Shown here piece after piece: positions 38,420-38,733 of a stretch of 64,000 nucleotides of DNA (position 1 is the stretch's first letter; the number at the start of each line of letters is the position of its first letter). The DNA comes from Macrostomum lignano (Eukaryota). Made by a program: the position numbers and the translations under genes. The stretch lies in NCBI GenBank assembly GCA_002269645.1, contig NIVC01000319.1:310001-374000 (forward strand). Reading direction: 5' to 3'. The notes under the pieces are model-generated. The model was given only the letters and a program-made list of their open reading frames with translations. It made no database searches and was not told where the DNA came from.

Positions 38420-38733
38420 TTACTCGCACTTCTTCCAATAGCCAAGCACCCCGCCAGAAGCCAGTAACACTCTTTTCCCGGAGCAGCGCTTTGAGCAGCA
38501 ATACGAGGCTGCACTGTCCTTACAGATACTGCCTTTCTTGTCGCACTCCACTTTGACGCACGCGATTGAGCAGCCTGTATGTGAATTTTGTATGCGATTG
38601 ATTAATAATAGTCTTGCCAACCAGCAAGCCAAGGATGTAATTAAATAAAATTTGGCTCAATAATCCCGCGAACTTCACCGAGAACCGCGAGCAGGACAAG
38701 CAGACCTAGCAGCACGAGTAGCTGGGTCTTCAT
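38420..38733 (-). CDS. Secreted 69-aa cysteine-knot (ICK/knottin, conotoxin-framework) peptide precursor, 2 exons
   Basis: Exon 1 38733-38679 MKTQLLVLLGLLVLLAVL; phase-1 GT-AG intron 38678-38575; exon 2 38574-38420 GCSIACVKVECDKKGSICKDSAASYCCSKRCSGKRVLLASGGVLGYWKKCE*. Signal peptide plus Cx6Cx7CCx3Cx18C. Confidence 0.75.

Follow-up and report, generated by a model that had tools for sequence, protein, structure and literature searches.

A transcribed orphan gene of Macrostomum lignano encoding a putatively secreted, cysteine-rich cationic peptide

Does a short stretch of the flatworm genome, flanked by part of a retroelement and by an array of repeats, hold a toxin gene that annotation had missed? 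The question was raised for positions 310,001 to 374,000 of contig NIVC01000319.1 of Macrostomum lignano (assembly GCA_002269645.1, Mlig_3_7). These 64,000 nucleotides (nt) are called here the window; adding 310000 to a window position gives the position on the contig, and all gene coordinates refer to the minus strand of the window. An original prediction, made from the letters alone, had placed at 38420-38733 a hidden two-exon gene for a secreted knottin peptide of conotoxin framework. We find that the gene is real, transcribed and protein-coding, has two exons, and is already in GenBank, where it is uncharacterised. As to its product, we favour, with reasonable though not strong confidence, a secreted peptide of about 5 kDa, restricted to the lineage, cationic (+6) and rich in disulfides, which would act outside the cell as an effector in the secretion of a gland or epithelium.

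Structure, annotation and copies of the gene

Joining the two exons (Table 1) gives a coding sequence (CDS) of 210 nt and a product of 69 amino acids (aa), MKTQLLVLLGLLVLLAVLGCSIACVKVECDKKGSICKDSAASYCCSKRCSGKRVLLASGGVLGYWKKCE. Exon 1 is translated as MKTQLLVLLGLLVLLAVL(G), its final nucleotide being the first base of the Gly codon, and exon 2 encodes (G)CSIACVKVECDKKGSICKDSAASYCCSKRCSGKRVLLASGGVLGYWKKCE, with eight Cys at spacings of 3, 4, 6, 7, 0, 3 and 18. The coordinates and translation given in the original prediction are confirmed, as are its clean signal-like first exon and its phase-1 GT-AG intron of 104 nt at the end of the signal-like segment. An in-frame TAA stands 11 codons 5′ of the ATG. 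Since the intron contains an in-frame stop, its retention would truncate the product at 30 aa. The guanine-cytosine (GC) content is 58% and 54% in the exons and 36% in the intron, a difference in base composition that fits a real intron, and reaches 70% at third codon positions (GC3).

The 69-aa product is 100% identical (69/69 aa) to PAA85542.1 (UniProt A0A267GJV9), "hypothetical protein BOX15_Mlig004682g2" of M. lignano, and the product of exon 1 matches the N-terminus of that entry identically. GenBank places the gene at 348420-348733 of the contig, which is window 38420-38733, a span of 314 bp equal to that from ATG to stop; removal of 104 nt from it leaves the 210-nt CDS. Because the protein is identical and the span is the same, the annotation must use the same splice. 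The Mlig_3_7 annotation was built solely from genome-guided and de novo assemblies of RNA sequencing (RNA-seq) transcripts, with open reading frames (ORFs) called by TransDecoder and transcripts overlapping repeats removed (PMC5730564). As a transcript-only annotation holds the identical CDS, the gene is transcript-supported, and the spliced transcript that had been proposed as a check is attested indirectly. The gene is thus hidden only on a naive ORF track: as had been remarked, the mechanical ORF list holds just its two halves, one of 30 aa (38641-38733) and one of 70 aa (38420-38632) that begins at a false TTG.

Both strands were also scanned for two-exon models made of a signal-like ATG start, a GT..AG intron and a Cys-rich second exon, with criteria set post hoc. 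The ATG at 38733 is the sole signal-like start found in this way across the 64 kb, and none of 20 block-shuffled windows yielded a comparable two-exon model, from which we conclude that the gene model is more than chance. Cysteine density by itself is not special: at least eight Cys occur in 173 of the 25,292 six-frame windows of 50 aa, mostly in tandem repeats.

The flanks of the gene hold few recognisable signals. Upstream, a run of seven T followed by AG, 53-44 nt before the ATG, is possibly a feature of trans-splicing or of an untranslated region (UTR), judging from the sequence, and the immediate 5′ flank (38734-38833) contains no TATA-like hexamer. Downstream, AATACA at 38244 is the sole hexamer of the 3′ flank that resembles a poly(A) signal; from 38126 downwards this flank overlaps, in antisense, the 3′ end of a plus-strand reverse-transcriptase ORF.

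A second in-frame acceptor is also present, at 38550 in exon 2 (Table 1). A product spliced there would lack GCSIACVK, be 61 aa long (...AVLVECDKK...) and contain exactly six Cys. In the GenBank CDS the upstream acceptor is taken, and we found no evidence that the one at 38550 is used.

Two more annotated genes, g1 and g3 of BOX15_Mlig004682, encode the same protein bar one residue of the signal segment (G10V). Their contigs are NIVC01001761.1 and NIVC01004680.1, and these two loci, being identical to each other over the aligned region, are probably redundant haplotigs. The ORF is intact in all three copies and the intron is equal in length in all, differing at two positions between the window copy and the two others. 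Around the gene, the three loci have about 1.3 kb in common, with further shared sequence beyond, and the neighbouring gene downstream recurs as well (594 aa in the window locus, 596 aa on NIVC01001761.1). It has no recorded Pfam match and was used as synteny anchor. Given this synteny with the same neighbour, together with the reported neopolyploidy of M. lignano, we read the three loci as duplicated or allelic syntenic loci of a polyploid and not as copies spread by a transposon.

The original prediction had suggested that the flanking transposable elements (TEs) could spread copies of the gene. A gene carried or spread by TEs is rejected in view of the number of copies, which are three only, of their all being syntenic, and of a pipeline that excludes repeat-overlapping transcripts. 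Comparison of the loci likewise gives no sign that the flanking retroelement or the repeat array mobilised the peptide gene.

The three loci differ in two further respects. Some 2.6 kb of GC-rich retroelement sequence between the peptide gene and its neighbour is present in the window copy and missing from the two other loci, which means a retroelement insertion here or a deletion there. Divergence also falls along a steep gradient, from 5-9% in the 360 bp 5′ of the ATG, through 1-2% in the gene, to its lowest value in the 620 bp on the 3′ side (Table 1), where the low-divergence part overlaps the 3′ end of the retroelement. Gene conversion or a constrained 3′ UTR could account for this gradient.

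The cysteine-rich product and its resemblance to knottins

The N-terminus has the layout of a classical signal peptide, by inspection and by hydropathy. A basic n-region (Lys2) precedes a Leu/Val-rich core of 14 residues (L5-L18), in which Kyte-Doolittle means over 9 aa rise to 3.4, and the small residues G19, C20, S21, I22 and A23 follow as a c-region. Signal-peptidase sites obey the (-3,-1) rule, with small residues at these two positions. Compatible candidate sites lie after V17-L18-G19, before C20, and after S21-I22-A23, before C24; the first would leave a mature peptide of 50 aa with eight Cys, the second one of 46 aa with seven, and no compatible site leaves only six. This N-terminal segment is probably a cleavable signal peptide and the product probably secreted.

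AlphaFold renders residues 3-26 of the precursor as a single helix, with a predicted local distance difference test score (pLDDT) of about 80. Such a model is compatible with a signal peptide or, less probably, with an uncleaved signal anchor, in which case the product would be a very small type II membrane protein with a Cys-rich ectodomain of 43 aa. Residues 5-25 may be taken as one hydrophobic stretch of 21, in line with the predicted helix, and Lys2 on its N-terminal side fits an N-in orientation. The strongly hydrophobic core, however, has only 14 residues, and the small polar G-C-S-I-A with its two compatible cleavage sites is typical of a c-region. We consider a signal anchor very improbable.

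Behind the hydrophobic core, eight Cys occupy positions 20, 24, 29, 36, 44, 45, 49 and 68, in the pattern C-x3-C-x4-C-x6-C-x7-CC-x3-C-x18-C. The mature part, as computed for the 50-residue form that contains all eight, has about 5.3 kDa, a pI of 9.0 and a net charge near +6, with 10 basic residues. Its last segment, between Cys49 and Cys68, is SGKRVLLASGGVLGYWKK, hydrophobic and cationic; here the long 18-residue last loop with a GKR motif, pointed out in the original prediction, is indeed present.

This motif raises another possibility, that of a prohormone or neuropeptide precursor from which cleavage at KR47-48, G51-K52-R53 and KK66-67, with amidation at Gly51, would release smaller peptides. 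S-G-K-R, a Gly followed by a dibasic pair, and two further dibasic sites do stand behind a signal-like N-terminus. They fall, however, within the Cys array, so that the products would stay disulfide-linked or have odd numbers of Cys. Chance alone should produce K/R pairs in a peptide where 10 of 50 residues are basic. Repeated peptide copies and conserved neuropeptide motifs are absent from the product, and neither Pfam nor the protein databases give a match. Such a precursor seems most improbable to us.

Modelled alone, the mature part gives three strands (residues 16-18, 29-36 and 42-49 of the mature peptide) at a mean pLDDT of 65. From the placement of the strands, the 18-residue last loop would form a beta-hairpin, which is the best-scored part of the model (pLDDT 72-77).

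How far does this product correspond to a knottin? The original prediction had described a C-C-CC-C-C framework. Such a six-Cys sub-array exists (C29, C36, C44, C45, C49 and C68; C-x6-C-x7-CC-x3-C-x18-C), while C20 and C24, in 'GCSIACVKVE', had been overlooked. The full order is therefore C-C-C-C-CC-C-C, with eight Cys, or seven after a cut at A23. The classical consensus of the inhibitor cystine knot (ICK) is CX3-7CX3-6CX0-5CX1-4CX4-13C, with a last loop of 4-13 residues. In the sub-array the loops are 6, 7, 0, 3 and 18 residues long, and the last is outside this range. Loop 2, with 7 residues, reaches or slightly exceeds the limit; in 90% of knottins it has 2-7 residues (PMC10138031).

Searches of known families agree with this partial resemblance. 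At E<=10, the full precursor meets nothing relevant in Pfam (sole match IBIN, E=0.68) and the 50-aa mature peptide has no match. Only a 42-aa fragment trimmed to the six-Cys part reaches PF02950 (Conotoxin), below threshold, with 12.7 bits and E=0.26 against a cut-off of 25.1. The alignment pairs residues 1-23 of this fragment with positions 49-70 of a profile of 75 and covers the C-x6-C-x7-CC-x3-C stretch alone; the match reflects the cysteine pattern and stays below family membership. Two sequence searches of the PDB at E<=10 returned no match. Foldseek, run with the low-confidence mature-only model against the PDB, gave hairpin fragments with a best E of 4.9 and no knottin among 20 matches. 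The membership claimed at the outset is not borne out by these results: the peptide may adopt a knottin fold, and its membership in a conotoxin or spider-toxin family is not demonstrable.

In its full form, the knottin hypothesis would make the mature peptide an ICK toxin-like molecule in which six Cys pair I-IV, II-V and III-VI, with C20-C24 as an extra disulfide, and which targets ion channels or membranes, be it of prey, predators or microbes. Besides the sub-array and the weak, pattern-driven PF02950 match, the three predicted strands with a hairpin between the fifth and sixth of the six Cys, as in ICK folds, speak for it, as does the cationic peptide behind a signal-like N-terminus. Moreover, unrelated phyla have evolved such folds convergently, and some families are confined to one lineage, for example mussel CRP-I (PMC10138031). 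The counterarguments are nonetheless several. The Pfam score comes to half of the gathering cut-off, and only after trimming, the structural and sequence searches of the PDB bring no knottin, the last loop is too long and loop 2 at the upper edge, and the two extra N-terminal Cys need an ad hoc explanation. A propeptide is also absent, the Cys array starting directly after the signal-like segment (at C20 or C24), unlike in conotoxin and spider-toxin precursors. We hold this hypothesis as a tentative, minority one. Of similar merit is, by analogy, another possible four-disulfide arrangement in which C49-C68 would close a cationic hairpin as in beta-hairpin antimicrobial peptides.

Comparison with other systems helps to situate these features. 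With ICK peptides (conotoxin framework VI/VII, spider ICK toxins, mussel CRP-I), the M. lignano peptide shares a signal-like N-terminus, a small Cys-rich domain in the last exon, the embedded C-x6-C-x7-CC-x3-C...C array, a basic character and a predicted hairpin between the last two Cys. It departs from them by its eight (or seven) Cys in place of six, by the absence of a propeptide or dibasic pro-cleavage site before the array and by the lack of a significant sequence or structure match. The known hosts compared are a mollusc and an arachnid, whereas the host here is a flatworm. The last loop of CRP-I has 3-5 residues (PMC10138031), against 18 here.

The WAP four-disulfide core (PF00095) displays the same order of eight Cys and the same central stretch, C-x(5-7)-C-x(5-7)-CC-x3-C. 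WAP domains are small secreted cationic proteins, often antimicrobial or protease-inhibitory, with a last spacing of about x3-5. The M. lignano peptide has no Pfam match to this family at E<=10; its first two spacings (x3, x4) fall far short of those in WAP domains, and its last (x18) far exceeds theirs.

Arenicins, the beta-hairpin antimicrobials of polychaetes, offer a parallel for the last loop, a hydrophobic cationic predicted hairpin bracketed by two Cys, the C49-C68 pairing being hypothetical. Arenicins have a 16-residue ring and are free 21-mers cut from a long precursor, while the hairpin here would form the C-terminal end of a larger domain with several disulfides; the two show no detectable homology in sequence.

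An insulin-like reading of CC-x3-C was dropped. Insulin has a C-x11-C in its B chain, a C-peptide and a final spacing of x8; the product has neither of the first two and its final spacing is x18.

Restriction to the lineage and possible role

Relatives of the peptide were sought widely. A word-indexed search of 5.8e9 proteins returned the query itself only, and an exhaustive phmmer search of 1.84e9 representative proteins the query and one spurious bacterial repeat protein of 1,901 aa. The latter was rejected as a relative, the match being confined to a low-complexity 'ASGG..GY.W' stretch in 7 repeats and compositional in nature. In a back-translated scan of metagenome contigs, 600 pattern matches were found and none was confirmed by tblastn. 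Flatworm-like DNA is present in these datasets, since the neighbouring reverse-transcriptase ORF matches many fragments there with 60-73% identity; the absence of the peptide gene is weak evidence all the same because short spliced genes are poorly captured in them. The search for paralogues by tblastn, another of the proposed checks, produced none in the window and the three loci (best non-self match E=0.11). On present data, and as far as sequence comparison reaches, the gene is a taxonomically restricted orphan.

An orphan of this kind might also be a real transcript with a nonfunctional 69-aa ORF, either young and de novo or part of transcriptional noise beside TEs. The lack of homologues, the retroelement fragment and repeat array on either side and the missing canonical poly(A) signal would agree with this, and no selection signal can be extracted from three copies. 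On the other side, a signal-like N-terminus, a phase-1 intron at its end, eight Cys, a GC3 of 70% and a GC contrast between exons and intron are unlikely to come together in noise; the ORF is intact in 3/3 copies, and the gene passed a filter against repeat-overlapping transcripts. A nonfunctional ORF thus appears improbable.

We therefore return to the secreted, disulfide-rich effector. Signal cleavage, secretion, disulfide formation and function are all inferred from sequence, and may be pictured as follows. The N-terminal 19-23 residues would serve as a cleavable signal peptide for the endoplasmic reticulum. The remaining 46-50 residues (about 5 kDa, about +6, with 7-8 Cys) would fold oxidatively into a compact domain held by three or four disulfides, in which the 18-residue Cys49-Cys68 segment would form a hydrophobic, cationic beta-hairpin, and the folded peptide would be secreted as an extracellular effector. 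Its role is probably a defensive or antimicrobial one, a toxin-like one, or that of another secretory-gland product. Size, charge, Cys content, the amphipathic hairpin and lineage restriction all lead us to favour such roles, as do the many gland-cell-type-specific secreted products that M. lignano expresses (PMC5977470).

Several points weigh against the effector reading. AlphaFold confidence is low over the Cys-rich part (pLDDT 55-65), the precursor and mature models both being single-sequence, and the Foldseek result given above points the same way. The hydrophobic residues 5-25 could be an uncleaved signal anchor instead. The CDS differences between copies amount to one nonsynonymous and one synonymous change, so few that a selection test across the three copies would be powerless and was dropped, and the 3′ flank is even less diverged than the CDS. 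The searches gave no orthologues in which conservation of the cysteines could be followed. Canonical AATAAA does not occur within 700 nt downstream of the stop. In full-text literature searches, the gene ID and the protein accessions matched no paper, and no data on expression level or tissue were found in the literature searched. The gene ID does not occur in the supplements of PMC5730564, PMC5816591, PMC7336406, PMC12896417 and PMC5946080, a negative that is uninformative because the files are incomplete for this purpose or use other ID schemes.

Could the peptide be a reproductive or other organ-specific gland product, such as a prostate seminal-fluid peptide or a protein of the cement, pharyngeal or adhesive glands? 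In situ screens in M. lignano have described 76 prostate-limited transcripts, 38 of the 65 with an identifiable ORF having a predicted classical signal peptide, and have mapped other transcripts to pharyngeal, cement, adhesive and rhabdite gland cells (PMC5977470). The peptide is likewise small, has a signal-like N-terminus and is an orphan. Reproduction-related genes are reported to evolve rapidly in the genus (PMC7336406), and fast evolution of gland proteins would explain the absence of homologues. The putative seminal-fluid proteins named Mlig-pro come from the same organism, are small and in many cases have a predicted signal peptide. The gene is not in the lists searched, however, and nothing was found that links it to the prostate or any other gland or tissue; the supplement negatives, as said, are uninformative here. 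We regard a product specific to one such organ as unlikely.

A bolder proposal joins these threads. The gene would belong to a Macrostomum-restricted family of four-disulfide, strongly cationic peptides having a knottin-like core with an unusually long amphipathic hairpin (C49-x18-C68), and would encode a membrane-active or ion-channel-targeting defence or predation peptide of epidermal, rhabdite or pharyngeal glands. We put it forward as speculative and rather unlikely. If true, it would be the first such toxin or antimicrobial peptide from a free-living macrostomid flatworm, and if secreted and bioactive the product would extend the known disulfide-rich effector peptides by a scaffold specific to flatworms. 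M. lignano, transgenic, transparent and amenable to RNA interference, is a good animal for testing this. As it stands, the gene is one of many uncharacterised orphan genes for secreted peptides already in the genome annotation. The main value of its re-examination is corrective: a real and transcript-supported gene with eight Cys and not six, triplicated by polyploidy in our reading of the loci, for which the knottin label expresses a resemblance.

Surroundings of the gene in the window

The plus-strand reverse-transcriptase ORF lies tail-to-tail with the peptide gene. It corresponds to the C-terminal portion of the enzyme of a retroelement that is repeated in M. lignano, putatively of the RTE clade to which the original prediction had assigned it. 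PF00078 is carried by related proteins, among which are many M. lignano fragments, some of them fused into unrelated gene models in UniProt. The 60-73% identical fragments mentioned above stem from JGI and ENA metagenome contigs, indicating macrostomid-like DNA in environmental datasets. The extra segment of the window copy holds the start of this ORF as well as an RNase H ORF.

Table 1. Features of the window and, where compared, divergence of the window copy from the two other loci
Feature	Window positions	Strand	Description	Divergence
5′ flank, distal part	38834-39095			5%
Immediate 5′ flank	38734-38833	minus	putative 5′ UTR or promoter	9%
Exon 1 (CDS part)	38733-38679	minus	55 nt; ATG at 38733, 18 codons and 1 nt	1.8% (the one nonsynonymous change)
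Intron	38678-38575	minus	104 nt; GTGAAG...ACAG, GT-AG, phase 1	1.9%
Exon 2 (CDS part)	38574-38420	minus	155 nt; TAA stop at 38420-38422	0.65% (one synonymous change)
Alternative in-frame 3′ splice site	38550	minus	AG at 38552-38551, 24 nt into exon 2	
3′ flank	37799-38419	minus	620 bp; 99.8% identity to other copies; probably holds 3′ UTR	0.16%
Block common to the three loci	37756-39091		about 1.3 kb	
Reverse-transcriptase ORF	37449-38126	plus	225 aa	
Segment not in the two other loci	35111-37755		about 2.6 kb, 57-69% GC	
RNase H ORF	35916-36818	plus		
Neighbouring gene	28420-33211	minus	594 aa	
Second RNase H ORF	22863-24065	plus	400 aa; PF00075, E=1.7e-11	
Minisatellite	39170-39425		32-bp unit	
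Perfect duplication	39783-39932		75 bp	
Repeat array	about 39800-47400		about seven units of about 1.0-1.2 kb each; 60-100% identity between units	
Satellite	48479-51388		24/48-bp period; about 60 copies of the 48-bp unit	
Further repeats	51421-52125		19- and 42-bp repeats	
SWIRM-assoc_1 ORF	6207-7529	minus	440 aa; Pfam E=1.8e-26; 67% GC region	
Tandem array	2796-3653		103-bp unit, 8.4 copies, 99% identity	
Tandem array	10030-11361		23-bp unit x41, then 25-bp unit x16	
Tandem array	25891-26634		19-bp unit, 40 copies	

On the other side of the peptide gene stand a minisatellite, a perfect duplication and, from about 39.8 to 47.4 kb, the repeat array, which the original prediction had taken for a Helitron array; the satellites that follow it create long spurious ORFs in several frames. 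Farther away, the second RNase H ORF is probably another retroelement fragment. Rfam and tRNA scans of the whole window gave no noncoding RNA matches. From its Pfam match, the ORF at 6207-7529 is probably an exon of a gene for a chromatin-remodelling subunit of SMARCC/BAF155 type. With the three tandem arrays in its first half, the window is very rich in repeats, and its GC content is heterogeneous, ranging from 29 to 69% in 2-kb windows.

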